DNA from: Anthoceros angustus
Lineage: Eukaryota; Plantae; Anthocerotophyta
Direction: 5' to 3'
Assembly: GCA_010909165.1 (NCBI GenBank)
Contig: MU008151.1
Span: 992,001 to 1,056,000, forward strand
DNA length: 64,000 nt
The notes under the pieces were generated by a model. That model was not told the DNA's origin, made no database searches, and saw nothing but the letters and a program-made list of their open reading frames with translations. Shown piece after piece: positions 3,301-45,625 of the stretch. The position numbers were made by a program, and so were the translations under genes. The stretch's first letter is position 1, and the number at the start of each line of letters is the position of its first letter.

Positions 3301-3399
3301 CCAGCTGCTTGCAGGCAGTCTGTTAAATAATACCCTGCGAGCATCGTCCAGGCTGTCACACTTCCGACACATGGCCACCAGACATGAGCCAATAAATAA

Positions 3400-4237
3400 T
3401 CATCTTCATTCTCGGGTCCATTGATGGCAAGGACGACGTATGCCCTCTCCAGAGGGCATCCAACAAGAACAACTATCCTTATGCCCATTGGAAATTCACC
3501 GATATCTGAATCATTGAAAGCAAGAACGTCCATATGCCCGCCCTTCCCAGATGACGTCCATACCCAACAGTATCAACATTATATATGCCCACTGGAAATC
3601 TACTGGAAAGGATCCTTCAAACATGAGAGAAAACAGTACTCAGACCCTGCTATTCACTTGTGGAGAAACACCATGGGTTATATCCGCAATATCATTGCAC
3701 TTGGAACCCTTCCCCATACGCTGACTTTGGTGACCGTGTTGTTCCCTTTCACAGGCTGCCAGACCCTGATGAGCTTAGAGTCATGAAAGATCTGATCATG
3801 TTATCGAAAATTACAAGTAAAGGGTTTCTAGGGTGGATCCAGTTTCCGTGGACACCCAACCCAGCCCATCATTCGTCACAGGGACCGTGCACGGAAAAAA
3901 CTCATCTTCATTCTCGGGTCCATTGATGGCAAGGACGCCCGTATCCCCTCTGCAGAGGACCCAACCCAGCCCATCATTCATCACAGGGACCGTGCACGGG
4001 AGCCGTTCCCCGTTCCGTTCCGGTGTCCCGATGTCGACTGACCCGGACAAATTCCCATTCCCATTTACTTATTTTAGCATGTGTAAGTTTGGGCTGTTTC
4101 GCCGTTCATGTGGGAAGTTTCGCTGCGTGGGGCCTGGCTGCCAGGGCTGAAGGCCGCGGGATGTGGTGTGGCCTGGAGGAGCTCAGCACCTGCCTGGTCC
4201 TCATTCCATTCTAGCACTTCGCATAGCAGAGCAGAGC
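3400..4237 (+). promoter_or_regulatory. Upstream cassette shared by all three Roco copies (also ~6930-7610 and ~22420-23123)
   Basis: Near-identical ~700-800 bp precedes each ATG. It contains ~35-bp repeats (ATTGATGGCAAGGACGTCCATATGCCCTCT..AGAGG), CCCAA/CCCAG and TTCCG microsatellites, and GCAGAGC directly before the ATG. The promoter role is inferred from position only. Confidence 0.55.
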
Positions 4238-6480
4238 ATGGCGGAAGAGCATGAGGCGGAGGATTGGCGCGCGCTGCCGGTTAAGCTGCAGCAGCTGCTG
4301 AAAGATCTGGGCCGGAATGCCGTGTCCCAACTACCCTTCCAGCTGCATATTGAAGAAGAGGATGGCGGCTACTTCAGTGGGCGAATCTCTAGGAAAATCC
4401 GTGGTGATGAGGGAAGGCACTGGCGAGTGCGCAAGCGGGTGTTGACAGCCATTTCCAACTGCCGCAGTCTCGAGCACATAACCATTTGGGGCTGGTGGGA
4501 CATCGGCTTGGATCGGGAGGATGAAGTGTCGGTTCTGTTGGGGGGCCTGGCGTCCAACCCTTGCCTGCACCTACTGGATCTGTGTGGCTGTGAAGGTTTT
4601 GGAAGGCAGGCGGCTTGCGAGGCTCTGGGCCAGCTTGTTGCATCCAGTCGCAGCTTACGAAGGCTTTCAGCACCGTTTGTTGGGCTTGATGCCGCCGGAC
4701 TGGGTGCCCTGGCCAAAGGCTTCAACAAGGATTCTGTCCTGGAGGAGTTGATCTTACAAGGGAACGAGGTGGGAGGTGCTGAAGGGGCACAGCACCTGGC
4801 CCGCATTCTGGCCACGGCTCCCCGTCTCAAGGATCTGTCACTGGAAGGCATCGGCATGGATGTGGCGGGAGCCCAGTGTATTGCAAATGCTCTTCCGCTC
4901 TGTGCCACGCTCCGGTTTCTGACGTTGGAAGATGGCGAGGCATTGCGGGGTCCCATTCCCGGCGGCCTCGGGCCCATGGGCACTGTGCTCAAACTTGCTT
5001 TCACCCGCGCGGATGAGGATGAGAATGCCTCCATCTCTGGCGTCACAGACCTTACATTGCTTATCTCGAAGGATGGGGAGGCAGGCCTGGCAGACGCCCT
5101 GGCCGGAATGCTGCGCACCAACGATCGTATCGAGAAGCTTGACACCACTCCATATGCTCTCATCCACGGCCTGGACGGGTTACGCTACAACTCCTCCATA
5201 TCTGAACTTCGTCTCTTGGGCTCCGGGACGCCGACGGATGTGTGGATGCGCCTTGTCCACTTGCTCCCGGAATGCAAAGCACTGCGTGGCCTGGCATTGA
5301 TGTTTCTCCAGGGCCACGCCTCGTTCAAGAAAGAGTTGCTGAGATCCTTGGAGGGCAACGCATCTCTGAAAAAGCTCGACATTTCTATCTGGGACGACCT
5401 GGATGATGACATGTTTAGGGACTTGATGAACTGTATTCAAGTCAACAAGACGTTACGGGAGATCAACATCAGGACAACATGGGAAGCGGAAGGAAAGGAC
5501 GCAATCATCAATGCAGCCTTGGCACGCAATGCCACTCAAGAGGCTTACTGGCCTTTGCTCGTGGGCAGGCAAGGGCCTGTGATGCCCAAGGCTGGGCGCC
5601 TCTTCCTGTGCGGTGCCCCTTTGGCAGGGAAGACCACTCTCCGCACGACCTTGATTCGCGCATGGAGACGATACACAGCCGCATCACTCAAGTCCTGGCT
5701 CCGCCAAGTTCCAGCTCGACTGAAGGGAAAAATATTTCGGCTTGGCGACGGATGGCTTCCGTCACCGGTGCCAGAACGGAAGGCATAGAAATCGAGGTGT
5801 TGCGCAACGACCGTAATATGCAAGTTACCATGTGGGATCTGGCTGGACAAGCTCACTACCGAGCTCTGCAAGACTACCTTTTTCCAACCTTCAACCAAGC
5901 ATGTGTCTTCCTGTTTGCGTTCAGCCCATTTGATGATGGGAAACCTCCCCAACTGGATCGGAAACCTCCCCAAGTGCATCCGTGTAATGTCCTGCAGGAC
6001 AGGTTCAGAAGGAGCTTGGCGTACTGGCTTAGGTTCATCAACTCCAATTGTCGCAACGTGGGCTCTACTTTGCCTCAAATATTTGTGGTGGCAACTCATG
6101 TGGATCAGCTGGAGGCTTCTGATGCTCTAGCATTACCGGATCTCCTTCAACCCGTTCTGACAGAGTTGGCCACCGAGTTTGAACAGGTTGTTCACGTGGA
6201 AACAAAAACACTCTTCTCCATGGACGCTCGATCTGCCAAGAGTGTGAAGCCCTTGCTGGACGCACTCATGGAATCGTTTCGAGCTCTATTTGCAATCAAA
6301 CTGTTTCGGGTACCGAGGTATGCAACCGATTGAGTGCTGATTTGACTGCCTGGGTATCCCAACATCCAGCTCAACCAATGGTGAGGAAACAGCAACTTCA
6401 AACTTTGTTCCAAAACGAGCTGAAGAGACTCCACGAAGGTGGGGTTCAAGATGAGGGGGAACGATTGGGAGCCATTCTTG
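4238..6480 (+). pseudogene. TRN1-like: TORNADO1-like Roco gene, copy 1 (LRR-ROC plus start of COR; truncated by rearrangement)
   Basis: ORF 4163-5788 from MAEEHEAEDW (ATG 4238) has RNI-like LRRs (LEELILQGNEVG, LKDLSLEGIG) and P-loop CGAPLAGKTT (~5609-5640). Next frame: RTEGIEI, WDLAGQ (5833-5850), VVATHVD. Homology to copies 2 and 3 stops at GCCATTCTTG (6480). Confidence 0.88.
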
Positions 6481-6930
6481 CTGGGAAAGGATGTCGTCAC
6501 TGGAATGGCGTCTGAGGCCCCTTGCCCCTCTATGACACTAGACAACGCGGAAAATCGCTCACGGCCATCTCCGATGTCCAACTAACTGGAGATATTGCTT
6601 CACCTTCTTCGAAGGTGAGGAAGGAAGGTGTGTTTCCATCCTTCCTATCCAGGGTGATTTGGTTGTGGAGAGCGTCAGCGGAAAGCGTGGCTTTGCAAAA
6701 AAAACCGTGTGAGCAACAGCAGCACCAACTTGCTCAATAGATTGCCGAACCCCACTGTGTAGAAACCATTAACCTGGTCGACACCACTGTCCCTTGACAC
6801 TTCAGCCACGTGTGCCATTGTGCAGCTGAAGGATTTTCTCACCTGGTCGACACATCCATGGCCTTCTGGAAAGGTGCAGGATTACCCTGATTCTGGTTGC
6901 AACATTTGCAGCCTATAATATAAACTCATC
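6481..6930. repeat. Multi-copy spacer module (copies or parts at ~16040-16400, 20686-21400, 21894-22440)
   Basis: AGAGCGTCAGCGGAAAGCGTGGCTTTTGC-A(n)-CCG..AGCAACAGCAGCACCAACTTGCTCAA is seen at ~6670, 16090, 20877 and 21895, and partially at 21295, with shared flanks. Confidence 0.85.
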
Positions 6931-7610
6931 ACCATTCTCGGTACAGTCATGAACCATTGATGCCAAGGACGTCCATATGCCCTCTTCAGAGGATTGATGG
7001 CAAGGACGTCCATATGCCCTCCAGAGAATGTTCATATGCAACAACAATAACAACAACTTTATGTATGTCCACTGGAAATCTATTGGAAAGAGAAAACAAT
7101 ACTGATACCCTGCTATTCACTTGTGGAGAAACACCATGGGTTATATCCGCAATATCATTGCACTTGGAACCCTTCCCCATACGCTGACTTTGGTGCGCGT
7201 GTTGTTCCCTTTCACAGGCTGCCAGACCCTGATGAGCTTAGATTCATGAAAGATCATGTTATCGAAAATTAAGTAAAAGGGTTTCTAGGCTGGATTCAGT
7301 TTCCATGGACACCAACCCAACCCAACCCAGCCCATCATTCATCACAGGGACCGTGCACGGGAGCCGTTTCCCGTTCCGTTCCGGTGTCCTGATCTCGACT
7401 GACCCGGACAAATTCCATTCCCATTTACTTATTTTAGCATGTTTAAGTTTGGGCTGTTTCGCCGTTCATGTGGGAAGTTTCGCTGCGTGGGGCCTGCCTG
7501 CCAGGGCTGAAGGCCGCGGGATGTGGTGTGGCCTGGAGGAGCACAGCACCTCTGGCCCTCATTCCATTCTAGCAGTCCGGGAAGCATAGCACAGCATAGC
7601 AGAGCAGAGC

Positions 7611-10600
7611 ATGGCGGAAGAGCATGAGGCGGAGGATTGGCGCGCGCTGCCGGGTAAGCTGCAGCAGCTGCTGCTAGATCTGGGCCGGAATGCCGTGCGC
7701 GTACTACCCGATCTGGATAATGATGAAGAGTATGGCGGCTACTTCACTGATCGAATCCGTGGTGATGAGGGAAGGCACTGGCGAGTGCGCAAGCGGGTGT
7801 TCACAGCCATTGCCCACTGCAGCAGTCTCGACATCATAACCATTAACCCCAGGTGGGCCATCGGCTTGGATCGGGAGGATGAAGTGTCGGTTCTGTTGGG
7901 GGGCCTGGCGTCCAACCCTTCCCTGGAAGTACTGCTTCTGATCGGCTGTAAAGGTTTTGGAAGGCAGGCGGCTTGCGAGGCTCTGGGCCAGCTTGTCGCA
8001 TCCAGTCGCAGCTTACTAGAACTTTCAGCATGGACTATTGGGCTTGATGCCGCGGGACTGGGTGCCCTGGCCAAAGGCTTCAACAAGGATTCTGTCCTGG
8101 AGTACCTGCACTTAGACGGGAACGAGGTGGGAGGTGCTGAAGGGCACAGCACCTGGCCCGCATTCTGGCCACGGCTCCCGTCTGAAGAACTGTCACTGAG
8201 GACATCGGCATGGATGTGGCGGGAGCCCAGTGTATTGCAAATGCTCTTCCGCTCTGTGCCACGCTCCGGTATCTGGCGTTGGGTGATGGCGTTGCATTGC
8301 GGGGTCCCATTCCCGGCGGCCTCGGGCCCATGGGCACTGTGCTCAAACTTGCTTTCACCCGCGCGGATGAGGATGAGAATGCCTCCATCTCTGGCGTCAC
8401 ATTCCTTTCTTTGCGCATCTCGAAGGATGGGGAGGCAGGCCTGGCAGACGCCCTGGCCGGAATGCTGCGCACCAACGATCGTATCGAGAGCTTCACCACT
8501 CCATATGCTCTCATCCACGGCCTGGACGGGTTACGCCGCAACTCCACCATATCTCATCTTCATTTCTTTAATTTTCCATTCGAACGGCGATCAGATGCGC
8601 CAGATGCGACGGCTGTGTGGATGCGCCTTGTCCAGTTGCTCCCGGACTGCAAAGCACTGCGTGTCCTGGACTTGGCATTGCTCCAGGGCCACGCCTCGTT
8701 CAAGAAAGAGTTGCTGAGATCCTTGGAGGGCACATCTCTGAAAGAGCTCAACATTTCTGGCTGGGACGCCCTGGATCATGACATGTTTAGAGACTTGATG
8801 AACTGTATTCAAGTCAACAAGACGTTACGGAAGATCAACATCGGGGGGACAACATGGGAAGCGGAAGGAAAGGACGCAATCATCAATGCAGCCTTGGCAG
8901 GCAATGCCACTCAAGAGGCTTACTGGCCTTTGCTCGTGGGCAAGCAAGGGCCTGTGAGGCCCAAGGCTGGGCGCCTCTTCCTGTGCGGTGCCCTTTGGCA
9001 GGGAAGACCACTCTCCGCACCACCATGATTCGCGCATGGAGACGACACAGCCGCATCACCGAGTTCCAGCTCAGCCAAGTTCTAGCTCGACTGAAGGGAA
9101 AAATATTTCGTGCTTGGCGACGGATGGCTTCCGTCACCGGTACCAGAACGGAAGGCATAGAAATCGAGGTGTTGCGCAACGACCATGATATGCAAGTTAC
9201 CATGTGGGATCTGGCTGGACAAGCTCACTACCGAGCTCTGCAAGACTACCTTTTCCGACCTTCAACCAAGCATGTATCTTCCTGTTTGCGTTCAGCCCAT
9301 TTGATGATCGGAAACCTCCCAACTGCATCCGTCTAATGTCCTGCAGGACAGGTTCAGAAGGAGCTTGGCGTACTGGCTTAGGTTCATCAACTCCAATTGT
9401 CGCAACGTGGGCTCTACTTTGCCTCAAATATTTGTGGTGGCAACTCATGTGGATAAGATGAAGCGTTCTGATGCTGAAGCATTACCCAATCTCCTTCAAC
9501 CCGTTCTGACAGAGTTGGCCACCGAGTTTGAACAGGTTGTTCACGTGGAAACAAAACACTCTTCTCCATGGACGCTCGATCTGCCAAGAGTGTGAAGCCC
9601 TTGCTGGACGCACTCATGGAATCGTTTCGAGCTCTATTTGCAACTAAACTGTTTTGGGTACCCGAGGTATGCAACCGATTGAGTGCTGATTTGACTGCCT
9701 GGGTATCCCAACATCCAGCTCAACCAATGGTGAGGAAACAGCAACTTCAAACTTTGTTCCAAAACGAGCTGAAGAGTCTCCACGAAGGTGGGGTTCAAGA
9801 TGAGGGGAACGATTGGGAGCCATTCTTGCCTATTTGCATGATGTGGGTAGTATCATCTGTTTTCAAGATACAGATGTTGTGGTGATAAATCCACACTGGA
9901 TGAGTCACAATTTTTAGGGCGACTCATTCACCTTCTAACCACAGCATGTCTCCGTCTACTAGTAGTTTGTCGTATTCCTCAGATGGGTTTGTTGCTCAAA
10001 GTCTGCTTCATTCCACCTTGGATGAGATTCTCAGAGGCACACAAGCGGAGGGGATTGAAAGTCAACATCTGGTATCATTGATGACCACTCTCAACTTATG
10101 CTATGAAGAGGATGGGACTCGACGTGTCGGATTCTTTGTTCCCTTCACCATGGCCGCCGGTAATGGTGACGCTGATCCTGGGAGACGACAGTTGAACTGG
10201 GAAACTGCTGATACAGCAAGCAATTACATCTACCTCGGAAGGAGGTTACAGTGCCTTGACAAGACGAAGACGTTTCTTGGTCCAGGCTTTTTCCTAGATT
10301 CCAAGTACGATAACTACCAACATGTCTTTGTGTCGATGGTGTGTGTCTTCAACCTGTTTACTGACATTGTGGAGGTTTGCGTATTGTAGGTCTGCCTTCG
10401 AAAGGATTTGTTCGGATTCCATGGCTTGCAACCTGAGCAGTATCGTATTGAACGCAACCTCATCAAGTTTTGGTGTGATGGTATGGATGTGTTTTGGAAA
10501 GCAGTGGGGATATCGGAGAGGACACCGGGACATCGGTGACCATATCGATATTCTGGTGAGGTCATCCAAGAGCAAAGATGAAACTATCGAGTTTCTCAAG

Positions 10601-11893
10601 GAGCATGTGATTGCAAAGTTGAAATCTTTTGTGCTTCCCTGAAGGCAGTCCGGGAGTCGAGCTTGTGGAAGGAATTATCAGGACCGAGTGTGTCGAAAAC
10701 CTCACACTCTGTATCTACCGGCATAATCAGTCAGTGCTAACGCAGGATTTGCTGAAGCGTGTTTTTCCAGACCAACATGATTGTACAGGGGAGATTTTCT
10801 CCTCGTGGGATCTGGCCGACTTCAAATGGTGGTGGCCAGAATGTCCTGAAGCCTTTTTGAGGAATGCCTTTGAGCGAGCTAAAGAGCTCTTAAGTGCTGG
10901 TGAACTCTTGGATGTCTTGCAAAGGCGACGAACAGGTCTCCGTCAAACCATATCCAACATAGATGCAGCTGTAGAGGAAGTCCTGCCTACAGAGAAAGGG
11001 GTGCTCGCACAACAAGACGCACCAGTTCAAACGTCTCGGTCTGCCAGCGTCCGACGTGCTAAATCCCTCCTGGAACAACTCACTCGGAGATGGGGAGCAA
11101 CTGCAAACCATCATTCAAGGGATAAGAGCTTTGGAGCACAACGTGAAAATGGTGGAGACAGAGGTGAAAGCAGTGGGAGTCAAAGTGGATAGAATTGGCG
11201 AGACTTTGCAACTTATCCAACATGAGATGAGCGCTATCAGGGCTGAGCAGGAAGCTACTCAACAATTTTGCTTTCTAAGATGGATGAGATTATGAATTTC
11301 TCTGCAAAATTAGAAAGCAGTCAGATACCCAGACGTCCCTACATCACCACTGCAGACGTGGGTGTAGTACAGAGGTTGATTGCAGGGGTGCGTGTGGGCA
11401 AAGCGGCTAAGCTGCACTTCATGTGCGAAAATATCTTTGGGAATCACATCGTGGAGGGCCAAACTGGATTCGACTTGACATTGGAGGATGCGAAGTGGAA
11501 GTGGATCAGGCCCCTAGCAATCAGAGGTATCAAGGTTTTGGTTTTCCTAGTGAAAGCTGGCCTACATGTGGCTACCGGCATTGGGAATGCGGTTCCCGAC
11601 CCTTCACCAGCTTGGATGGAGCGCTGTATCTCACTGCGGCCTCTCTGGACGCAGACCTGTCCAAGGTAGATCTCAACCTGACAGGTCCATCGGCGGACCA
11701 GGACATTTCCGTGAAGGAGGCATGGATTACCCTGAGGGATCTGGTCAAGCCGTTGGTAAAGGATCACATCGGCGAGATATTCCAACTGCATAGGTGCAAT
11801 TTCGGAAAAGGCCTGAGGAGGACGAGGAGTGGCATGGGTGTGCCCAACGTGTATGCAGAGGGAATTGACAGACGTGTTTATGAGAAACTCTGA
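7611..11893 (+). CDS. TRN1-like: TORNADO1-like Roco gene, copy 2 (LRR-ROC-COR-C-terminal; full length, read through apparent frameshifts)
   Basis: Overlapping ORFs join into: MAEEHEAEDW, ~12 LRRs, P-loop at ~8980-9010, WDLAGQ (~9205-9222), VATHVD, COR (LVSLMTTLNLCYE, YLGRRLQCLD, IDILVRS, G..GVELVEGII), a coiled-coil, and IPRRPYIT...KLHFMCE...HIVEGQTG. The last motif resembles the TORNADO1 C-terminus (from memory). Frameshifts fall mostly in homopolymers. The stop position is approximate. Confidence 0.85.
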
Positions 11894-12329
11894 TGGGAGC
11901 TACTCAAACGACGTGTGTTGCAGCATCACCCCGGGATTTTGGTACATGACTGGAGGAGCGATCTGCACCACGTGATTGGGTAGTGGTATAAGGATGTGTA
12001 GCCCAATCCTGCTTTGTTTCACGTCAGTCTTTGCTGATGGCCACCTCTGAATTCATCTTTTGAGTGGTTCAAGATTGTGACTCTTGAACACGTTCCAGAA
12101 TTCATGAACAACAGCAGGCCCCTGGTTGGTGAAGGAGGATGCTCCGGTCTGAGCATGCATGAATGGCCAGGAATGACATCCTGCCCTGCTCCATGAGTAA
12201 TGGCTAATTCAAACTTCATCTGTGCTTCAGTATCTTCTAACAACTGGCGAGCCGGGGACAAGCAAGAAGCCTGGCTGCAAGAGCTTGACTGATCAGAGCA
12301 GTCCCACTCAGTTCCCCACGAAATGGACC

Positions 12330-12707: not shown

Positions 12708-12993
12708 TGCGAACGGGATTGTCATTCTGCCGTCTCTTGAAGGATTCGATTACTGCAAGAAGACGTCACTTCACATCTTATTCACCTGGTTGCCATCCTG
12801 GTCCTAATGCAGGGATGAAATGGTAGGCAAAGCGCCCTGGATTTTGGCTAGCCTCGGACTGTGTCCCTCGATGTGACCATTTTCCTACTGATAACGTGCC
12901 TGTTACTCGTCCAAAGGCAGGTGCCAGATGAGGGCTCCTCTGTGGTGGGTTTCCAAGTCAGGTCATTTCGGCACTGTGCCCTTCCCTGCAGCA

Positions 12994-14272
12994 GGAGCTA
13001 GGATGGCGGCAGGTGCACGCCGGATTTGTGTTGAAGGAAGGACGATTTCTCTGCCTAAGTCTGTTTCCTTCAGGAGTCCTGCGGAGGCCCCAGGAAACTG
13101 TCGTGACCTGGCGGGACCCTGTCTACTCCAGTTTACAGGGTCCAGCCCTGAAACTGATCCCTGATGGATCCTCTCCTGGCTGGGTAGGATAGATTTTTGG
13201 TTTGTAAATGTTCTAGAGATGTAGTGAGCTTCCTCTTGACTGCAGAATTAGGACCAGCAGCTAAAATACGTTCGAGCTGCTGCACGGTACTGTACGAAGA
13301 ACCTGCTTATCATGAAAGCGATTATGAAGAAAGTGATATGGAAATATTAACGACAAACATCTTTGGCTTGTTTGCCAGAACTGACGTGGCCGTGGCTTGT
13401 GGAGGTGCTGACGACCTGCATTCAATCAGGAGGCCAAGTCGTCAGCAAGAGGGTTGGGAGGTTCGACCGCATTCTATCAGCGATTGTCTCCAGGTTTTCG
13501 AACAGAAGGATGTCAGGAAGGCATGGTTGTACCCAATTCCGTGACATTTGTGTGCTCTTGCATGCATGTGAAAATGTGGCAGCCTTGTGTGTAGGAAGAC
13601 AGCAACACGCACAAAACCGTTCATCCTCTTCAAGACGGGGTAGACGGCCCAAATCATTCCGGGCCAGGCAGTCCAGCAGCCGCCGCCGCCGAGCTGGCAG
13701 CGCGCGCCAGTCCTTGGCCTCGTCCGCCATGCTACACTGTGCTTCTCAGCGATGTAAAAGGTGGTCTCTGTGGCGAACGCGTGGGAAACGTCCACGCCCC
13801 GAACGGGATAAGACTGGCTTCGCACCGGACTTCCTCCATCCATTCTCTGTTCTGTTCCTGGAATCCCTGCAGGCAAAGGGATGGACCAAGTCAGGAAAAG
13901 GAGAATCGTCTCCTCGACTCAAGGCAGCAAATTAGGTGCTAGGTGATGCCGTGTCCTCAACCTAATGACTTAAGTACATACTTTACCCTAAGAAGCTTGC
14001 TTTCCACTTCGGAGAAGCTGGGGACTCAAGGAGCATCTTTCGCTTCGCGTCTACGCAGAGGCAGACGTCATCATCCTCAACCCGCCTGTTGCAGCCAGGT
14101 GAGGAGCAAGCCGATGCGGTGCAGTTGCTCACAAGACGTGCACACCAAGGTAGCATATGCTAACCCGAATCGGAACCTTGACAACCTGGCTGCAACCACC
14201 TGCAACACCCTAATCCACACTGGCATATGCCTCACCATCTCATGCAGAATCCACCATTCCCTGCAGCTTGCA
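12994..14272. repeat. ~1.3-kb segmental duplication, direct copy at ~28824-30155
   Basis: Colinear near-identity from GCTAGGATGGCGGCAGGTGCAC through CACCATTCC(C)TGCAGCTTGCA. Confidence 0.9.
13422..13730 (-). pseudogene. N-terminal fragment of a divergent Roco paralogue (second copy at ~29400-29640)
   Basis: MADEAKDWRALPARRRRLLDCLARNDLGRLPRLEEDE aligns by eye with MAEEHEAEDWRALPVKLQQLLKDLGRNAVSQLP...EEED of copies 1-3. Confidence 0.7.
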
Positions 14273-16000: not shown

Positions 16001-16749
16001 TTGGGCTGAAGGAGAAAATGTCGCAGGCACGGGGAAGGTGAGGAAGGGAAGGCGTGTTTCTATCCTTTCTATCCAGGGTGATTTGGTTGTGGAGAGCGTC
16101 AGCGGAAAGCGTGGCTTTTGCCAAAAGAAAAAACCGCGAGAGTAACAGCAGCACCAACTTGCTCAACAGATTGCCGAACCCGACTGTGTAGGAACCATGA
16201 ACCTTGCCAAACATCACCAGTTCAACAGTGATGAAGGCCACGGGGAACTACATCGAGTGCAGCAAATGCATAAAATGGTCAAGCTTGAAGGGGCTGCTAC
16301 ACAGACAAGAGCGTCTCCCTTGACACTTCAGCCATGTGTGCTGTTGTGCAGCTGAAGGATTTTCTCACCTGGTCGACACATCCATGGCCTTCTGTAGCCG
16401 TCCCAAAACCGCTCCTGGAAGCGCGAAAGTGCAGGATTATCCGCAGAGATTGACTTGACTATCGTCTGCAAATTGCAAAGAAACGAGAGGTGCTCACAAG
16501 CCATCGCAAGGTTGATTACTTAGCTTCACCGAACCTCAACCGCAAACTCATGTTCAGCAAGTGTGCCCGCGCAAGGAGTCGCGCCAAGATGCCACGGTCT
16601 GCTGGATCGAGCACGGCAGCTCGAGGCTCAGCTCCGAGGACAACAACAGACGGAGCTCAATGCAGGGTTCCCTGCGAGTCTGGCCTGGGTCAGTACAGCC
16701 TGATTCTGGTTACAACATTTGCAGCCTAATTGTCACGGCGTACAAACTT

Positions 16750-18213: not shown

Positions 18214-21200
18214 CATATTGCTGATACTGGGAATGCTAACACAATGTTGATACCGGGACTGCTACATGAAATGGGAAATGCCATATAAAATGATGAATGA
18301 CACGATATAGGTGAAGGAGTAAGTTATATCGTATTATGAAGGGGATCAAGTTATATATTATTGTGACAGTGAAATTCGTAATCTCGTATTCGACTTCTGA
18401 CGATAAGAAATGCTAACTGTTTAAAAGAATGTTTTGAGCTCTTCAAGCGAAAGCTGTAGGTTAGTTATCATTAAGAGAAGTAGACCTAATTGTTGGAAGC
18501 ATTTTTTGAACATTGATGTTAAGTTAGCTGAATGTCTGAAGACATGAGATTGGCAGTTCATAAACGACGCGGTTAGAGGCATAGTGAAGGTGTGTAGGAT
18601 ACTCTCTGCCCACATACACGATGACAATTTTCAATTGTATTACATCTTGAAAAGTAGAATGGTAATAAAAATACCTTAGTTTCTTTGATAATAGTTTTGG
18701 TAATAACCTTGGTAATAGTTTGCATGGGCCATTTGTTAAGATATTGGATAGAGATAGATTTGAATAGAAACTGTAGATATAAGTTGGGATATGAGCTATT
18801 GGCAATTGGAGTGTGAATAATTAGCGATTGGAATGTGTGGAGTATTTGTTTGCCACTTGATAATTGTCGACAGTCTATACCCCAAATGTCAATAGTTTAT
18901 ATCCAAAGCTAAATCAATAGTTCACATCCAAATCTATGTCTAATCGATATCCTAGCAAGTCACCTCTACAAACAATTGCCAAGCTTTTGGCAAAAGTCAA
19001 AGGGAAGTTGGGTATTTTTCATCCCATTCTGGTTTTCAAGATGTAATAAAGCTTAAAATTGGTTATTGTCGCACATGGGCAGAGAATATCTTATATATTT
19101 CATGTAGAATATCTTATATATTTCTATATGTATCTCTTCTAACCCTTGTCAATGGATCAATCTATCGATGTCTTCAAACATTCAATCATCTTAAAAATGC
19201 CCCAAACAATTAGGTCTATTTCCCTTATCAATACTTAGTTTTTAGTTTTTGTTTCAAGAGATCAAAAACTTCTCTCATGTTGTCAGAAGATCAAATTCGA
19301 GATCCCGAATTTCCCCTTCACAATAGAATATAACTTGTCCCTTGGTTATGTCACTTCATTCTTGTCCCATTCCACCATGTCAAACAAGATTATTGAGATC
19401 CTTGGCAGTTTTGCTTATCCTATGTCTGATATTGAAAAGAAAAGCAGGAAAGGATTCAAGTACTGGAAGCGACCATAAATCCAAATGGAGCAATTACTAC
19501 CACAAGTGTGAAGGCAAAGTTGATAATGCCTAAGTTGGTAGCATGATGATTTTGTTCGCAACTTTACATTCTCAAATGCAACATATGGGAAGCAAAATGA
19601 GCAAAAAGAGGGCTGAGGATCGTAATCTATAGTGTAACATGACTCCATTGGCCAGGAGTTGGCCGCCAAAATCTTGCACAGGGGGGTGAGGTGAGTCAGG
19701 CGGCACGTGTTCACCACAACTTGCTCAATAAGTGTTTCAAGAAGTGGCAAATTCACGTCACCCACCTCATCCACGGACACGACTCGCTTGGATGCACGCA
19801 GACTCGACCCTCCCATCCTCGTGTATGGTGGGTGGGTATTGGCCCTTCAAGCCTGCAGCTGCCACGACCAAAGCTCCAGTGCACACAGACGTGGTGTACT
19901 AGCATGGTGTGCTGGGATGTCTTGTGGGCCTGCAACATGTACGCAATCCAAGACTTACCTCATGGACGAGCTGAGAGGACGCCAACAAGATTGCTACAGG
20001 AAGGTGTGAGCAGCTTACTCCTCGCCTCTTGGACCCAGAGGCTGAGGCTGTAGAGGCTGCTGTGATCGGCATTTTGGTGTCTGACCTCTTTAGCACCTAC
20101 CCAAAGCACTTGCATACCCTCCAGCCTTCACACTGCAACGGAAGGCCCGACAATGTCCGGGCTAGTGAAGCCCGGATGCAGAGCCATGCTTATCGTTGCC
20201 ACCTTTCCGGGAAATCCGTTGCGCAACCGCAACTTGGCACTGGAAGAAATCGGACTCGAGGAACCCAGGATGTATAGCCTGAAGTGCAGCATCCTTATCT
20301 AGCATCATAAGCATGCGTGCTCAAGCCTGCCAGGTGAACGAGTGGAAATGCACATGGTCAAGATACAGTGAACACATTCAGACTTCAGAGTTGACATAAT
20401 CGTCAACCCACTCCAACTCACCAACCCTTGGCCTCTTCCGAGTACATGCATACATGCACGTGTCCAAGCCTTGATCACGCCCGATCCCCACATGAACATG
20501 AGCCATCTGCAAACCGGTGCACACGGTGGGCATCTCTTACAATGATCTCTCGCTTCTCCAGGCGTGACATTATCTTGGTGCTCCCATGGCAGTCATTGCA
20601 GTCTTTTCGGTCCTCTGCTTGAATGATTTCTAGATCTTTGGCACACTGTCAGGATGTGTGTGTTCCATCTTCCCGACCGGCCAAAGCTGGGAAAGGATGT
20701 CATCACTGGATTGGCGTCTGAGGCCCCTTGCCTTCACGTCTCTATGACACTAGACAACGCGGAAAATCGCTCACGGCCATCTCCGATATCCAACTAACTG
20801 GAGATTTTGCTTTCTTCGAAGGTGAGGAAGGGAAGGTGTGTTTCTATCCTTCCTATCCAGGGTGATTTGGTTGTGGAGAGCGTCAGCGGAAAGCGTGGCT
20901 TTTGCAAAAAAAAAAAACCGTGAGAGCAACAGCAGCACCAACTTGCTCAATAGATTGCCGAACCCGACTGTGTAGAAACCATTAACCTGGTCAAACACCA
21001 CCGGTTCAACAGTGATGAAGGCCACAAGGAACTACATTGAATGCAGCAAATGCATAAAATTGTCAAGCTTGAAGGGGCTGCAGCCTACACAGACAAGAGC
21101 ATCTCCCTTGATACTTCAGCCTCCCTTGACTGGAATGGCGTCTGAGGCCTCTTGCCCCTCTATGACACTAGACAACGCGGAAAATCGCTCACGGCCATCT

Positions 21201-21577
21201 CCGATATCCAACTAACTGGAGATTTTGCTTTCTTCGAAGGTGAGGAAGGGAAGGTGTGTTTCTATCCTTCCTATCCAGGGTGATTTGGTTGTGGAGAGCG
21301 TCAGCAAATGCATAAAATTGTCAAGCTCGAAGGGGCTGCAGCCTACACAGACAAGTGCATCTCCCTTGACACTTCAGCCTCCCTTGACACTTTAGCCACG
21401 TGCGCTTAGATCGGTACTTAGATGGGGTGCCTGAAGGGAGTGGATGCCCTTGGTGCAAGTAGCTTAGGCACACCAAGGTACAAGTTGTTAAGTACCAAGT
21501 CCCATGACGGAAATCCAGTCTTTAGTGGAGTTAAATACAATTCTTCTTCTTCTTCCTGTGGGTCCTCTTGCTCAGGG

Positions 21578-21893
21578 GACAGAGCAGAGCCGCGGACTCG
21601 CCTTCCTGCGCCACGAAGAACTGTTGCTGTAGCGGGATTGCAGCTCCACGAAGAATTGGCGAGGCAGGAGGGAGTTCACAGCAGGTCCCACGTTGAAGTC
21701 GATGATGTGCGGCGACGTCAGGTCCTGGATCACCACGATGGTGCGCTCGTCTGGACTCCACAGGCTCCGCAGCGCCTGCCCCGATGTGGCCGGGGTAGGC
21801 TCGGTTGTCGTCACCACCCGCTGTGCTGCTCCAGCTGCTTGCAGGCAGTCTGTTAAATAATACCCTGCGAGCATCGTCCAGACTGTCACACTT
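21578..21893 (-). pseudogene. Second copy of the TPM-domain exon fragment
   Basis: Near-identical to 3045-3365 (SGQALRSLWSPDERTIVVIQDLTSPHIIDFNVGPAVNSLLPRQFFVELQSRY). The splice donor is mutated. Confidence 0.7.
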
Positions 21894-23123
21894 CCGAAAG
21901 CGTGGCTTTTGCAAAAAAAAAAACCGTGAGAGCAACAGCAGCACCAACTTGCTCAATAGATTGCCGAACCCCACTGTGTAGAAACCATTAACCTGGTCAA
22001 ATATAGCAAGAGCATCTCCCTTGACACTTCAGCCACGTGTGCCATTGTGCAGCTGAAGGATTTTCTCACCTGGTCGACACATCCATGGCCTTCTGGAAAG
22101 GTGCAGGATTTCCCGCAGAGATTAACTTGACTATCGTCTGCAAATGCAGCGAGACGAGAGGTGCTCACACGAGCCATCAGAAGGTTGATTACTTAGCTTC
22201 ACCCAACCTCAACTACAAACTCAGCATAAAATACAATGTTCAGCAAGTGTGCCCGCGCAAGAAGTCGCGCCAAGATGCCACGGTCTGCTGGATCGAGCAG
22301 GGCAGCTCGAGGCTCAGCTCGCCATGGGCTGGGGGCCGGTCACCGTAGGCGGGCGCGAGTCTGTCCTGGGTCAGTACAGCCTGATTCTGGTTGCAACATT
22401 TGCAGCCTATAATATAAACTCATCACCATTCTCGGGTACAGTTATGAACCATTGATGCCAAGGACGTCCATATGCCCTCTTCAGAGGATTGATGGCAAGG
22501 ACGTCCATATGCCCTCTCCAGAGGATGTTCATATGCAACAACAACAACAACTTTATGTATGTCCACTGGAAATCTATTGGAAAGAGAAAACAGTACTGAT
22601 ACCCTGCTATTCACTTCTGGAGAAACACCATGGGTTATATCCGCAATCATCATTGCACTTGGAACCCTTCCCCATACGGTGTGGTTTGGGAGAGGAAGTT
22701 GTTCCCTTTCACAGGCTGCCAGACCCTGATGAGCTTAGATTCATGAAAGATCATGTTATCGAAAATTATAAGTAAAAGGGTTTCTAGACTGGATTCAGTT
22801 TCCATGGACACCCAACCCAACCCAACCCAACCCAACCCAACCCAGCCCAGCCCAGCCCATCATTCATCACAGGGACCGTGCACGGGAGCCGTTCCGTTCC
22901 GTTCCGTTCCGGTGTCCCGATCTCGACTGACCCGGACAAATTCCAATTCTTCATTTATTTTAGCATGTTTAAGTTTGGGCTGTTTCGCCGTTCATGTGGG
23001 AAGTTTCGCTGCGTGGGGCCTGCCTGCCAGGGCTGAAGGCCGCGGGATGTGGTGTGGCCTGGAGGAGCTCAGCACCTGCCTGGCCCTCATTCCATTCTAG
23101 CACTTCGCATAGCAGAGCAGAGC

Positions 23124-26100
23124 ATGGCGGAAGAGCATGAGGCGGAGGATTGGCGCGCGCTGCCGGTTCTGCAGCAGCTGCTGGATCTGGGCCGGAATGC
23201 CGTGTGCTGCTGACCTGTCCGGAGCAATGAAGAGAGTATGGCGGCTACTGAGTGGGCAAATCCGTGGTGATGAGGAAGGCACTGGCGAGTGCGCAAGCGG
23301 TGTTGACAGCCATTGCCAACTGCCGCAGTCTCGTCACCATTGACCAGGTGGGCCATCGGCTTGGATCGGGAGGATGAAGTGTCGGTTCTGTTGGGGGCCT
23401 GGCGTCCAACCCTTCCTGGAATACTGGTCTGTATGGCTGTGAAGGTTTTGGAAGGCAGGCGGCTTGCGAGGCTCTGGGCCAGCTTGTTGCATCCAGTCGC
23501 AGCTTACGAACACTTTCAGCATGTTGGGCTTGATGCCGCGGACTGGGTGCCCTGGCCAAAGGCTTCAACAAGGATTCTGTCCTGGAAGACTTGGACTTAA
23601 GGGAACGAGGTGGGAGGTGCTGAAGGGCACAGCACCTGGCCCGCATTCTGGCCACGGCTCCCCGTCTCAAGGATCTGTCACTGAAAGACATCGGCATGGA
23701 TGTGGCGGGAGCCCAGTGTATTGCAAATGCTCTTCCGCTCTGTGCCACGCTCCGGTATCTGGCGTTGGATGATGGCGTTGCATTGCGGGGTCCCATTCCC
23801 GGCGGCCTCGGGCCCATGGGCACTGTGCTCAAACTTGCTTTCACCCGCGCGGATGAGGATGAGAATGCCTCCATCTCTGGCGTCACATCTTTATTTGGAT
23901 ATCTCGAAGGATGGGGAGGCAGGCCTGGCAGACGCCCTGGCCGGAATGCTGCGCACCAACGATCGTATCGAGGAGCTTGTCACCACTCCATATGCTCTCA
24001 TCCACGGCCTGGACGGGTTACGCCAACTCCACCATATCTGAACTTCGTCTCGGGACCCATCAGCTGCGACGGATGTGTGGATGCGCCTTGTCCAGTTGCT
24101 CCCGGAATGCAAAGCACTGCGTGTCCTGGACTTGGGCTCTCAAGGGCCACGCCTCGTTCAAGAAAGAGTTGCTGAGATCCTTGGAGGGCAACGCATCTCT
24201 GAAAAAGCTCGACATTTATTGCTGGGACGACCTGGATGATGACATGTTTAGGGACTTGATGAACTGTATTCAAGTCAACAAGACGTTACGGGAGATCGAC
24301 ATCGGGGGGACAACATGGAAAGCGGAAGGAAAGGACGCAATCATCAATGCAGCCTTGGCACGCAATGCCACTCAAGAGGCTTACTGGCCTTTGCTCGTGG
24401 GCAGTCAAGGGCCTGTGAGGCCCAAGGCTGGGCGCCTCTTCCTGTGCGGTGCCCCTTTCGCAGGGAAGACCACTCTCCGCACCACCATGATTCGGGCGTG
24501 GAAACAACAGATAGCCGCATCAAAGTTCCAGCTCGGCCAAGTTCTAGCTCGACTGAAGGGAAAAATATTTCTGCTTGGCGACGGATGGCTTCCGTCACCG
24601 GTACCAGAACGGAAGGCATAGAAATCGAGGTGTTGCGCAACGACCATGATATGCAAGTTACCATGTGGGATCTGGCTGGACAAGCTCACTACCGAGCTCT
24701 GCAAGACTACCTTTTTCCGACCTTCAACCAAGCATGTATCTTCCTGTTTGCGTTCAGCCCATTTGATGATGGGAAACCTCCCAACTGCATCCGTCTAATG
24801 TCCTGCAGGACAGGTTCAGAAGGAGCTTGGCGTACTGGCTTAGGTTCATCAACTCCAATTGTCGCAACGTGGGCTCTACTTTGCCTCAAATATTTGTGGT
24901 GGCAACTCATGTGGATAAGATGAAGCGTTCTGATGCTGAAACATTACCGAATCTCCTTCAACCCGTTCTGACACAGTTGGCCACCGAGTTTGAACAGGTT
25001 GTTCACGTGGAAACAAAAACACTCTTCTCCATGGACGCTCGATCTGCCAACAGTGTGAGGCCCTTGCTGGGCGCACTCATGGAATCGTTTGGAACTCTAT
25101 TTGAAACTAAACTGTTTTGGGTACCCGAGGTATGCAACCGATTGAGTGCTGATTTGACTGCCTGGGTATCCCAACATCCAGCTCAACCGATGGTGAGGAA
25201 ACAGCAACTTCAAACTTTGTTCCAAAACGAGCTACAGAGTCTCCACAAAGGTGGGGTTCAAGATGAGGGGAACGATTGGGAGCCATTCTTGCCTATTTGC
25301 ATGATGTGGGTAGTATCATCTGTTTTCAAGATACAGATGTTGTGGTGATAAATCCACACTGGATCAGTCACAATTTTTAGGGCGACTCATTCACCTTCTA
25401 ACCAGCATGTCTCCGTCTAGAGGTTTGTCGCATTCCTCAGATGGATTTGTTGCTCAAAGTCTGCTTCATTCCACCTTGGATGAGATTCTCAGAGGCACAC
25501 AAACGGAGGGGATTGAAAGGCAACATCTGGTATCGTTGATGACCACTCTCAACTTATGCTATGAAGAGGATGGGACTCGACGTGTCGGATTCTTTGTTCC
25601 CTTCACCATGGCCGCCGGTAATCGTGACGCTCTTCCTGGGACACGAAAGTTGAACTGGGAAACTGCTGATACAGGAAGCAATTACAACTACCTCGGAAGG
25701 AGGTTACAGTGCCTTGACAAGACGAAGACGTTTCTTGGTCCAGGCTTTTTTCCTAGATTCCAAGTACGATAACTACCAACATGTCTTTGTTTTGATGGTG
25801 TGTGTCTTCAACCTGTTTACTGACATTGTGGAGGTTTGCGTATTGCAGGTCTGCCTTCGAAAGGATTTGTTAACCGGATTCCATGGCATGCAACCTCATC
25901 AATATCGTATTGAACGCAACCTCATCAACTTTTGTGCGATGGTATGGTTGTGTTTTGGAAAGCAGTGGGGATATCGGAGAGGACACCGGAGACATCGGTG
26001 ACCATATTGATATTCTGGTGAGGTCATCCAAGAGCAAAGATGAAACTATCGAGTTTCTCAAGGAACATGTGGTTGCAAAGCTTGAAATCTTTTGTGCTTC

Positions 26101-27384
26101 CCTGAAGGCAGTCCGGGAGTCGAGCTTGTGGAAGGAATTATCAGGACCGAGTGTGTCGAAAACCTCACACTCTGTATCTACCGGCATAACCAGTCAGTGC
26201 TAACGCAGGATTTGCTCAAGTGTGTTTTTGCAGTCCAACAAGACTGTACAGGGGAGATTTTCTCCTCAATGGATCTGGCCGACTTCCGCTGGTCGTGGCC
26301 ACCATGTCCTGAAGCCTCTTTGGAGAGTGCCTTTGAGGGAGCTGATGAGCTCTTAAGTACTGGTGAAGTCTTGGATGTCTTGCAAAGGCGACGAACAGGT
26401 CTCCGTCAAACCATATCCAGCATAGATGCAGCTGTAGAGGAAGTCCTGCCTACAGAGGAAGGGGTGCTCGCACAACAAGACGCACCACTTCAAACGTCTC
26501 GGTTTGCCTACCTCCGACGTACTATATCCCTCCCTGGAACTAGTCACTCGGAGATGGGGAGCAACTGTTGCAAACCTTCAATCATGGGATGAGAGATTTG
26601 AAGCACGACGTGAAAATGGTGGATACACGGTTGAAAATGGTGGAGACAGAGGTGAAAGCAGTGGAGTCAAAGTGGATAGAGTTGGCGAGACTTTGCAACG
26701 TGAGATAAGCGATATGAAGACCTGGCAGGAAGATACTCTACAACTCTTGCTTTCGAAGATGGATGAGATTATGAATTTCTCTGCAGAATTAGAAAGCAGT
26801 CAGATACCCAGACGTCCCTACATCACCACTGCAGACGTGGGTCTGGCACAGAGATTGATTGCAGGGGTGCGTGTGGCAAAGCGGCTAAGCTGCACTTCAT
26901 GTGCGAAAACATCTTTGGGAATCACATCGTGCAGGGCCAAACTGGATTTGACTTGACATTGGAGGATGCGAAGTGGAGGTGGATCAGGCCCTTAGCAATC
27001 AACGGTGCAAAGCTATTGCTCTTCCTGGCCAAGGCTGGCCTACACGTGGCTGCCGGCATTGGGGTGCGGTTCCCGACCCTGCTACCAGCTTGGATGGAGC
27101 GGTTTCTGTGGCTGCGGCCTTGGGAATCAGCCCTGTCCCATTTAAATCTGGACCTAACAGGACCAGCTGCGAGCCAGAACACTCCCGTGCAAGAGGCATG
27201 GATTGCTCTGAAGAATCTGTTGCAACCGTTGCTGAGGGATCAAATGGCTGACAAATTCCAACTGCACAAGGTGCAATATCGGAAACGGCAGGATGGAGGA
27301 CGAGGAGTGGCATGGGTTTGCGAACGGTGTATGCGGAGGGAATTACAAGACAAGTCTATCAGCCGCTCTGACGGGAGCAACTAG
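23124..27384 (+). CDS. TRN1-like: TORNADO1-like Roco gene, copy 3 (full length, read through apparent frameshifts)
   Basis: ATG at 23124 (ATGGCGGAAGAGCATGAG), LRRs, P-loop CGAPFAGKTT (~24445-24475), WDLAGQ (~24666-24683), VATHVD, COR, then MCENIFGNHIVQGQTG...VAWVCERC...stop at 27384. Colinear with copy 2. Confidence 0.85.
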
Positions 27385-27759
27385 AACGTCGTGTGTTGCA
27401 GCCTAACTTTGGCATTTGCAGGATGACTCTAGGAGCCATCTGCATCATGTGATTGGATAATGGTAGGTAGACAGGCATTAGACTGTAGAGCCTAATCCTG
27501 CTGTATCTTACATCACTCTTTGCGAAATCCCACCTTTGTCGAATTCGTCCCTTTTTGGTTGTTCAAGCCTCTGACTCTTCCAGAACTGTGGAGGGCCCCT
27601 GGTTGGTGAAGGGAGGGATCCTCCAGAGTGAGCATGCATCAGTGGCCAGGAATGACATCGTGCCCTGCACCTTGGAGTAATGACTAACACAAATTTGATC
27701 TGTGCATCTGTAGATTTTAGGGGTACCAACGTCTTGGGAAGAACAGCCAACCCGAGCTG

Positions 27760-33706: not shown

Positions 33707-35209
33707 CGCCTGTGAACCGGAGTGATGTGCAGACATCGAGCGCGAGAGAAGAAAGCCAGCGATCGTCAGATGTCACATATCAATTGCAATAACCCTCCGG
33801 AACTGCGGTACTGATCGCCGTTTCCCGCCCTCAACACTCCTCCAGCACGCCGAGAGAGGTCCGGGCCATTACTATGTGCAATCGCGCCCCCAAAACTTAT
33901 CATCCCGCTGTTTGCCAGAGACATAATTGGATGCCTGTATATGCTGCATGGGAACATGTGCCCCGTTATTAAGGCGATCGACGGAGGCGACGCGCGCTTG
34001 CCGCCTCTCCAAACAGAGTAGCCGGGTCAAGGGATGTCGCCATTAAGTGCGATAAGAGCGTGAAGGGCAGCATGTCTGATTGAAGATAAACGCTATGAAC
34101 CCGCGTGGGAGAAAACGCCCCTCGCTGCATGCGGAGCGCGCAGTAAGGAAGGGTTGATGGGCACGCCACAGGCCAGAGACATTCTGCAATGGAGCGGAGG
34201 CTCCATATCGCGCGCTCCGTGGTTCGCAAAAGGTTCCGGATGTCTTGTCTGTTTTGCACACGCAATGCAAAGAAAGAAGGCCGCCCATGGAAGTGACCAG
34301 CCGCACGATGTGGCGCGAAGTCAAGGCCTGCCATTTCGTCAACTCCGTACGCAGGAAATGCCATTTGTCCTGTGCAATACATTGCATACACCTGATCGCA
34401 TGCATTTATACCGATGAACCCCGGCCTTGTTTCCAAATGCCGGCTTCCAATTTTGTAACTCATTATCACGAGCGGACATGGCAAATTTGTCGATTTTCAT
34501 GTCTGCACGGCCTTCGACACATAGGAGGCGGGTGAAGCAGTGGCCAGTATTTCTGTACCACCATCCTTGGGTTTTGGTGTACCATGAAAATGGACTTTGT
34601 ACAGTAACAGGACAATGAAAACAAAGCCACCCTGAAAACTAGCCTACGGAAATGAACTAACAACTCCTGGAGAAAGAAGAACAAGTGTTTCATGCCAGAG
34701 TATAGAAGAGGGGGAAGCATAGCAACCGAGAGAAAAGAAGGATGGGAAGAACATTCAATTCTTTGCAGTGCAACGTGGAAGGGACATGTAGCGGAGAACA
34801 AGTTACTCCGCTTGTAGTGAAGGGAGTTTCCACGTGCTAGAACACAATGTTAGAGGAGGGAACTATTGGAAAACACATTGTGCAGATAATGATGGGATTT
34901 CACCTATCTCGATATATATAGACATATAGTTTGTTTATGCCTATATGTCTGCATGTCTATATATGTCTGCATTCCTGCAGATATAGACATGTATGACATA
35001 TAAGTTAATTTCCTTAGCCTATGGCGCAGGAACATTGTACAGGATGATGCGAAAGAAAGCCATGGGACAAGGGAAGAGGAGGGGAAAACTGGAAAACAAC
35101 TTCTGCAACAGCATGTTTGTTTCTCCCCGTACTCCTGCATATATAGGCATATATTTCATATACATTATTCGGTATATTGCATATATGTGTACATATACTT
35201 TTTTTCTTG

Positions 35210-45384: not shown

Positions 45385-45625
45385 AAGGAAGGGTCTGTGG
45401 CCCAAGGTGAGGCTTGTGTGGCCTCGAGGAGGGGTCTGTGGCCCAAGGAGTGTGTGTGGCCCAAGGTGAGGTCTGTGTGGCCCAAGGTGAGGTCTGTGGC
45501 CCGAGGAGGGGTCTGTGGCCCAAGGAGGGGTCCGTGGCCCAAGGAGGGGTCCGTGGTGGCCCAAGGAGGGGTCCGTGTGGCCTGTGAGGGGTTTGTGTGG
45601 CCAAAGAGAGGTCTGTGGCCCGAGA
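45385..45625. repeat. ~19-21-bp minisatellite (GGTCTGTGGCCCAAGGAGG-like, about 12 units)
   Basis: GTGGCCCAAGG / GTGGCCCGAGG is repeated in tandem with small variants. Confidence 0.85.

Follow-up and report, generated by a model that had tools for sequence, protein, structure and literature searches.

A 64,000-nt stretch of Anthoceros angustus DNA (NCBI GenBank assembly GCA_010909165.1, contig MU008151.1, positions 992,001 to 1,056,000 of the forward strand; all of it is referred to here as the window) contains three copies of one gene unit, each encoding a leucine-rich repeat (LRR) domain followed by a Roc GTPase domain. Comparison of the window with itself delimited the units at 3959-6481 (copy 1), 7312-12232 (copy 2) and 22837-27712 (copy 3), with additional homologous stretches at 12988-14272 for copy 2 and at 28832-30155 for copy 3. 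In copy 1 the open reading frame (ORF) begins with an ATG at 4238 and stays open for some 470 codons, comprising an N-terminal region, 12 LRRs and the Roc P-loop. All LRRs of this copy lie in a single open frame without intron-like interruptions, spaced by 32, 30, 28, 29, 28, 44, 29, 23, 28, 28 and 29 residues, i.e., by 28-32 residues apart from one spacing of 23 and one of 44. Searches by blastn and tblastn across the 64 kb returned the three full copies only, with no extra partial copy and no stand-alone LRR cassette, and no direct repeat of at least 18 nt was found inside the LRR domain (4440-5560).

The domain following the LRRs displayed the Roc motifs, a P-loop (GAPLAGKTTL) and a DxxG-type motif (WDLAGQ), and matched Pfam Roc with E values of 6e-5 in copy 1 and 9e-4 in copy 2. 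These matches score below the gathering cut-off because the frame is broken, and full-length relatives pass it. A COR-A match in copy 2 was faint (Pfam E 0.09); in copy 1, which is truncated ahead of that region as its homology to copies 2 and 3 stops at 6481, no COR was found. Pfam searches of ORF pieces downstream of copies 2 and 3 gave weak COR-A and coiled-coil matches only and no caspase domain. A coiled-coil-like segment lies past the COR region of copy 2 (10975-11292; weak Pfam matches to DUF16, E 1e-4, and CLZ, E 8e-3). No piece scanned with Pfam matched NB-ARC, and since the P-loop domain is Roc, an identity as plant nucleotide-binding LRR receptors (NLRs, NB-ARC-LRR) was rejected.

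An exhaustive HMMER search identified the closest relatives as LRR-Roc-COR-A proteins of 1400-1500 amino acids from Marchantia, Riccia and Logan assemblies, with at most 37-41% identity; the COR-A domain is carried by the relatives P0153, P0155 and P0023, and the nearest named relatives are liverwort proteins. A word-indexed protein database returned one weak match for a 516-amino-acid ORF and none for a 131-amino-acid piece, and the family is absent from it. At 90% identity the best relative, P0002, belongs to a cluster that was considered as a set of paralogues and discarded, as the cluster members are other pieces of one gene. Because the closest relatives combine LRR, Roc and COR-A domains, the three copies are assigned, by sequence similarity, to the TORNADO1-like LRR-Roc(-COR), i.e., ROCO, genes of a land plant.

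Strand codons and the predicted concave face

The distribution of differences was determined by a three-way MAFFT alignment with a codon-by-codon read-out. The first nine codons of each repeat were taken as LxxLxLxxx, with positions 2, 3, 5, 7, 8 and 9 counted as x codons and the Leu/Ile/Val codons as structural. Between copies 1 and 2 the LRR domain carries 68 nucleotide differences in 69 x codons, 5 in 35 structural codons and 24 in 244 scaffold codons. The x codons, 20% of all codons, thus hold 68 of the 97 differences (Fisher p 3e-30, binomial p 1e-26). Position 3 differs in every one of the 12 repeats, position 7 in 9 of 11 and position 5 in 7 of 11, followed by position 8 (6 of 12) and position 2 (4 of 12), and positions 1, 4 and 6 each differ in a single repeat of 12. 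More than one base was exchanged in many cases: 28 of the 47 differing codons were changed at two or three bases. The Leu codons standing between the variable codons are almost unchanged, third positions included, indicating that the patches are not simply old blocks. A contrast that acts codon by codon in this way is naturally explained by selection on side chains.

The initial annotation had described this pattern as hypervariability confined to the exposed strands of a near-identical scaffold. All motif pairs that it quoted for copies 1 and 2 were recovered at their places, and the strong clustering in x codons was borne out, but the variability is not confined to the strands, as further hypervariable stretches occur before LRR1 (4325-4395), in the LRR9 loop (5204-5231) and within Roc (5659-5702). 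The helices are indeed near-identical, with no difference at 4500-4562, two at 4591-4658 (one of them synonymous) and one, synonymous, at 4680-4743. However, this near-identity is not special to the scaffold, as the non-coding DNA upstream (2.9-4.4% divergence among the copies) and the Roc region (2.8-5.6%) have diverged similarly little. That flanks and Roc match the scaffold in this respect suggests that the units are simply young or homogenised.

To place the variable codons on a structure, an AlphaFold2 model of the copy 1 LRR domain was computed from an alignment of 25 relatives (mean predicted local distance difference test score, pLDDT, 81.6; predicted template modelling score, pTM, 0.81). 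Foldseek returned NLRP9, ribonuclease inhibitor (RNI) and other NLRP LRR domains as top matches (E ~1e-10). DSSP assigned 12 short strands to the model, each starting at position 3 of a repeat. Copies 1 and 2 differ at 52% of the strand residues, at 42% of the three residues following the strands and at 4% of the helix residues (p 3e-15). In LRR proteins the strands line the concave face; Leu residues at positions 1, 4 and 6 are buried in the core, whereas those in between are exposed to the solvent. In the model, every patch falls on a beta-strand of an RNI/NLRP-like horseshoe, and variability affects the residues that alternate along the 12 predicted strands and face outward; the mapping to the concave face follows from secondary structure and repeat register rather than from computed accessibility.

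Non-synonymous (dN) and synonymous (dS) divergence was estimated by the Nei-Gojobori method for the three copies. At x codons dN was 0.51 between copies 1 and 2, 0.29 between copies 1 and 3 and 0.28 between copies 2 and 3. The corresponding scaffold values were 0.028, 0.014 and 0.011 for dS and 0.035, 0.021 and 0.019 for dN, so that x-codon dN amounts to 18-26 times scaffold dS. Together with the placement on strand residues, this ratio agrees with the proposal of the initial annotation that diversifying selection has acted on a ligand-binding face, which fitted every test run. The gene copies and the hypervariable segments of the LRR domain are compiled in Table 1.

Table 1. Positions of the three gene copies (c1, c2 and c3) and of the variable segments in the N-terminal part of copy 1.
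Feature	Position in window	Strand	Remarks
Copy 1 (c1)	4238..6481	+	frame intact through N-terminal region and 12 LRRs to Roc P-loop GAPLAGKTTL
Copy 2 (c2)	7611..12232	+	LRR, Roc, weak COR-A, coiled-coil region; at least 8 frame-breaking indels as assembled
Copy 3 (c3)	23124..27712	+	c1-like and c2-like tracts in a mosaic; small deletions, at least 15, many within patches found in c3 only
N-terminal hypervariable segment	4325..4395	+	before LRR1; low model confidence; may be cap strand
LRR1 strand patch	4469..4498	+	c1 LEHITIWGWW, c2 LDIITINPRW; model strand residues 80-84
LRR2 strand patch	4565..4594	+	c1 LHLLDLCGCE, c2 LEVLLLIGCK; model strand 112-116
LRR3 strand patch	4655..4681	+	c1 LRRLSAPFV, c2 LLELSAWTI; model strand 142-144
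LRR4 strand patch	4739..4765	+	c1 LEELILQGN, c2 LEYLHLDGN; model strand 170-172
LRR5 strand patch	4826..4852	+	c1 LKDLSLEGI, c3 nearly as c1, c2 frame-broken; model strand 199-203
LRR6 strand patch	4910..4942	+	c1 LRFLTLEDGE, c2 LRYLALGDGV, c3 nearly as c2; model strand 227-231
LRR7 strand patch	5042..5068	+	c1 VTDLTLLIS, c2 VTFLSLRIS; model strand 271-275
LRR8 strand patch	5129..5155	+	c1 IEKLDTTPY; little variation; model strand 300-303
LRR9 strand patch and variable loop	5198..5240	+	24-nt length difference in c2; model strand 323-326
LRR10 strand patch	5282..5308	+	c1 LRGLALMFL, c2 LRVLDLALL, c3 c2-like; model strand 351-354
LRR11 strand patch	5366..5392	+	c1 LKKLDISIW, c2 LKELNISGW, c3 c1-like; model strand 379-381
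LRR12 strand patch	5453..5479	+	c1 LREINIRTT, c2 LRKINIGTT; model strand 408-410

Mosaicism of the copies and short-read contigs

Sites at which two copies agree against the third were not distributed at random among the three copies. They formed 109 runs where 145 were expected, and none of 5000 shuffles reached 109 (runs test p<2e-4). In copy 3 these informative sites alternate in tracts resembling copy 1 and tracts resembling copy 2, and patch variants are likewise shared in pairs, LRR6 and LRR10 by copies 2 and 3 and LRR5 and LRR11 by copies 1 and 3. The copies are mosaics.

The family was also followed in Logan contigs of four runs placed on 3950-9949, two from organism A (RNA and DNA) and one DNA run each from organisms B and C. 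On these 6 kb, 86 contigs were placed for organism A RNA, 270 for organism A DNA, 1534 for organism B and 484 for organism C. These hundreds of short contigs, many of which fit both copies, show a family that is conserved in the three organisms and has multiple copies in each of them. The RNA contigs of organism A demonstrate that the family is transcribed, at the level of the family and not assignable to copy 1, 2 or 3. At scaffold position 4816 a synonymous third-position change (G>T) was carried by every contig covering the site in organism B (27 contigs) and organism C (12 contigs) and by no contig of organism A, and G>A at 4776 is distributed across the organisms in the same fixed manner. 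Such species-fixed scaffold differences point to concerted evolution or to an expansion after speciation.

Among the contigs listed, loose ends occurred at patch edges (4471, 4474, 4589, 4654, 4823, 5063 and 7947), and the overhangs were mostly in frame and carried new strand variants, e.g., L-S-Y-I-R-I-Y-P-Q-F at LRR1 and P-A-L-Q-D-L-R-A-E-R at LRR2. A single overhang, that at LRR3, contained a stop codon. Breakage of this kind is what a de Bruijn graph produces when copies share a scaffold but diverge in their patches, and it is independent of the assembler that produced the window.

Several further repeats accompany the units. The spacer after copy 1 (6480-7334) recurs piecewise before copy 3 (20686-22834) and at 16034-16394, the recurring pieces being 16034-16394, 20686-21305, 6480-6887 and 21896-22409; the duplication unit therefore includes intergenic DNA and has undergone rearrangement. 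A short unit of about 40-64 nt, whose translation in one frame includes PSPSFITGTVHG, occurs two to three times immediately upstream of each copy (3394-3455, 3854-3999, 7089-7360 and 22583-22885) and adjoins a CCGTT microsatellite. This short unit may represent a repeat close to the promoter, or else a small mobile element moving with the duplication unit. Elsewhere in the window, a tandem repeat with a 287-nt unit (3.2 copies, 90% identity) occupies 35199-36146. In addition, G-rich minisatellites with strong GC skew lie at 42288-43005 (periods 23-25 nt) and 45382-45630 (period 19 nt). The long minus-strand ORFs at 42109-43005 and 45377-46126 are spurious and due to these minisatellites.

Origin of the contrast between patches and scaffold

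The explanation that we consider likely is a birth-and-death or concerted mode of evolution, together with diversifying selection acting on the concave face and yielding a candidate repertoire of receptors other than NLRs. According to this explanation, the three copies would be members of a multicopy tandem family of TORNADO1-like ROCO genes in which an LRR horseshoe of the RNI type is followed by a Roc GTPase and COR. Turnover would proceed by duplication, unequal crossing-over and gene conversion. Within a species, these processes would keep the units, with their flanks, helices and strand Leu codons, at about 97-99% similarity and reshuffle segments among copies. At the same time, selection would retain amino-acid changes at the outward strand residues, i.e., positions 3, 5, 7 and 8 and sometimes 2 and 9. 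The varied residues would form a concave, ligand-binding face, so that the copies differ in the surface that they present. If NLRs and brown-algal LRR-ROCOs are taken as analogues, the proteins would most likely be intracellular receptors, in which the LRR face binds variable ligands of pathogen or non-self origin and the Roc-COR switch signals.

The state of the copies has to be considered in this context, as all three are frame-broken as assembled. Near 5739, copy 1 is 1 nt short relative to copy 2, and the remainder of Roc lies in another frame (5479-6333). The same 1-nt deficit was observed in copy 3 (24572) by comparison with copy 2 (9110), with the GTPase split over two frames; copy 2 alone reads through at that site (KIFRAWRRMASVTG...TEGIEIEV). 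A deletion in copy 2 at 8990 is matched by DNA contigs of organism A. Among the contigs listed, however, RNA contigs carry the intact version of the copy 2 sites 8732, 8990, 9044, 9251, 9323 and 9803, indicating that either an intact, expressed paralogue exists or copy 2 is mis-assembled. In copy 3, the patches found in this copy only (LRR1, 2, 3, 4, 7, 9 and 10) have net deletions of 8, 3, 5, 2, 2, 1 and 2 nt, of which all but the 3-nt deletion break the frame, whereas the patches that nearly match copy 1 or copy 2 (LRR5, 6 and 11) are free of deletions. The third variants that the initial annotation had read at the same codons of copy 3 are therefore unreliable, since each of these unique patches carries a deletion. 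Copy 3 is possibly a decayed pseudogene or, in part, a collapsed or mis-polished consensus, and the three copies of the window may all be pseudogene members of the family or mis-assembled.

Along with the broken frames, several further points weigh against diversifying selection within a receptor repertoire. With a scaffold omega of about 1.2-1.7, which agrees with neutrality, and with the broken frames, these particular copies may be evolving neutrally, in which case selection must have acted on functional ancestors or donors. Neither the broken frames nor the near-neutral scaffold nor the exchange among paralogues that the contrast requires had been noticed in the initial annotation. The statistics are drawn from three copies only. 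The patches are known as assembled, and in the best DNA run only 27% (copy 1) and 34% (copy 3) of the sampled 31-mers were found; these word shares are alike and do not separate copy 3 from copy 1 in read support. Patch dN exceeds scaffold dS about 20-fold, far more than is known from plant NLR clusters, and an unusual source of mutations therefore keeps some plausibility. Finally, the proposed function in immunity is purely an analogy, and the role cited for Arabidopsis TORNADO1 is one in development (Cnops et al. 2006, as cited in PMC11378527).

Among the alternatives, a tandem duplication of very recent date, after which ordinary point mutations came under extreme positive selection with neither conversion nor segment exchange, appears unlikely. 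It would account for whole units, non-coding flanks and Roc included, being only 3-5% divergent as in young duplicates, and also for the near-identity of the patch Leu codons at the nucleotide level, which is expected if the patches are not old blocks. Against it, the informative sites of copy 3 are significantly clustered into alternating tracts, and identical patch variants occur pairwise (LRR6 and LRR10 in copies 2 and 3, LRR5 and LRR11 in copies 1 and 3). It would also need some 60 non-synonymous changes to be fixed against about 5 synonymous ones, in copies that now look neutral or are broken.

Slightly less probable still is an artefact of assembly or polishing, in which mixed reads of paralogues homogenised the scaffold and garbled the patches, so that the contrast, in particular that of copy 3, is not real. 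Small indels occur in all copies, many of them within homopolymers, the deletions of copy 3 are located in its unique patches, the best DNA run holds only 0.27-0.34 of the sampled words, and RNA contigs restore the frame at several indels of copy 2. On the other hand, the de Bruijn contigs of four runs and three organisms show a high-depth scaffold that ends at patch edges with differing, mostly in-frame continuations, the DNA contigs of organism A agree with the deletion at 8990, and the LRR frame of copy 1, whose LRR patches are sensible, is open across 470 codons. The signal is real and departs strongly from randomness.

The initial annotation had also raised a targeted diversification mechanism, for which no support was obtained. 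Precedents for programmed conversion are the pseudogenes of chicken immunoglobulin loci and the cassettes of the lamprey variable lymphocyte receptors (VLRs). Here, a dedicated process acting on the strand codons could comprise templating of the type known from diversity-generating retroelements (DGRs), hypermutation by a deaminase or programmed short-tract conversion of an expressed LRR-Roc gene by damaged neighbouring copies, possibly in somatic cells of a haploid plant. The extreme, roughly 20-fold contrast in rate, the frequent multi-base replacement of codons, the concentration of length changes in the patches and the presence of truncated or frame-broken copies with identical scaffolds as potential donors are in line with such a process. 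Yet we regard it as highly improbable, since there is no mutational signature, lone Leu codons between variable codons are spared, which fits selection rather than a local mutator, patch variants are shared as a mosaic between germline copies, and variants occur in germline assemblies of three organisms. All 12 types of substitution are present (35 transitions, 46 transversions) and changes are spread over the codon positions as 32/26/23, third positions changing as often as the others; this spectrum rules out adenine-specific DGR mutagenesis and hypermutation by deaminases alone. No template-like partial copy was detected in the 64 kb, and the only reverse transcriptase among the longer ORFs scanned is a Ty1/copia-type fragment (50722-51171, + strand; Pfam RVT_2, E 6e-24), which is what remains of an ordinary retrotransposon and lies 27 kb away from copy 3. 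An Rfam search found nothing in the window.

A VLR-type arrangement of germline cassettes was excluded as well, as the germline copy 1 has a complete 12-LRR frame and the 64 kb hold no stand-alone cassettes. The single open frame across all LRRs excludes an exon-shuffled LRR-ROCO type, and homogenisation of internal repeats in the style of fungal HNWD genes or PRDM9 is excluded by the lack of internal DNA repeats. Were programmed conversion nevertheless at work, plants would have their own equivalent of the receptor diversification that draws on pseudogene templates or cassettes.

Relation to known receptor families

The nearest analogue in function and architecture is provided by the LRR-ROCOs of the brown algae Ectocarpus and Saccharina, in which an LRR domain is fused to a Roc-COR GTPase. 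These genes are clustered, turn over rapidly, include many pseudogenes, show positively selected residues on the concave LRR face and have been proposed as immune receptors other than NLRs (PMC3341825, PMC11378527). In brown algae each 24-residue LRR is encoded by a 72-nt exon and exons are shuffled, whereas here 12 RNI-type LRRs of 28-29 residues lie in one frame. The repeats are dissimilar to each other at the DNA level, homogeneity is found between paralogues instead, and the lineage is that of a land plant.

Clusters of highly variable NLRs (hvNLRs) resemble the present family in their tandem arrays, exchange between paralogues and diversity at exposed LRR residues (PMC8226289; RPP8, bioRxiv 10.1101/694240), and in these clusters the variable exposed residues predict the binding site. 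They differ in that the predicted switch here is Roc-COR instead of NB-ARC and the LRRs are of the RNI/NLRP type instead of the plant-specific type. The contrast between patches and scaffold is also much sharper here than is known from the NLR literature.

The fungal HET-D/E family shares with the hornwort copies a near-identical scaffold, a few hypervariable codons at an interaction surface and pseudogene members, a pattern that has been explained by concerted evolution within and between loci together with diversifying selection (PMC1805685; PMC4986451). In the fungi the near-identity is among the repeats (WD40, ANK, TPR) inside one gene, here among equivalent LRRs of paralogues, and repeat-induced point mutation (RIP) does not apply here. 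Arabidopsis TORNADO1 and liverwort 'COR domain-containing' proteins share the N-terminal RNI-type LRR and the Roc domain with the copies and have COR-A in addition, for which copy 2 gave the faint match. Identity of the LRR domain to alignable relatives was 25-38%, in a comparison that took in no Arabidopsis sequence. We know of no report of hypervariable multicopy arrays for these relatives; in the library searched, a literature search for hypervariable ROCO arrays in land plants found no paper, and one for ROCO expansions in hornworts, bryophytes or TORNADO1 genes found nothing relevant.

We class the copies as a land-plant family whose LRRs show receptor-style hypervariability on a predicted Roc-COR chassis. 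Land-plant intracellular immunity has been described almost wholly in terms of NLRs. If the Roc-COR switch, the hypervariable face of the RNI/NLRP type and the sharing among several species all hold, the family would constitute an independent, ROCO-based recognition repertoire in plants. Such a repertoire would parallel the one proposed for brown algae and offer a testable case of receptor diversity without NB-ARC, and TORNADO1-like proteins would gain a possible second role in recognition.

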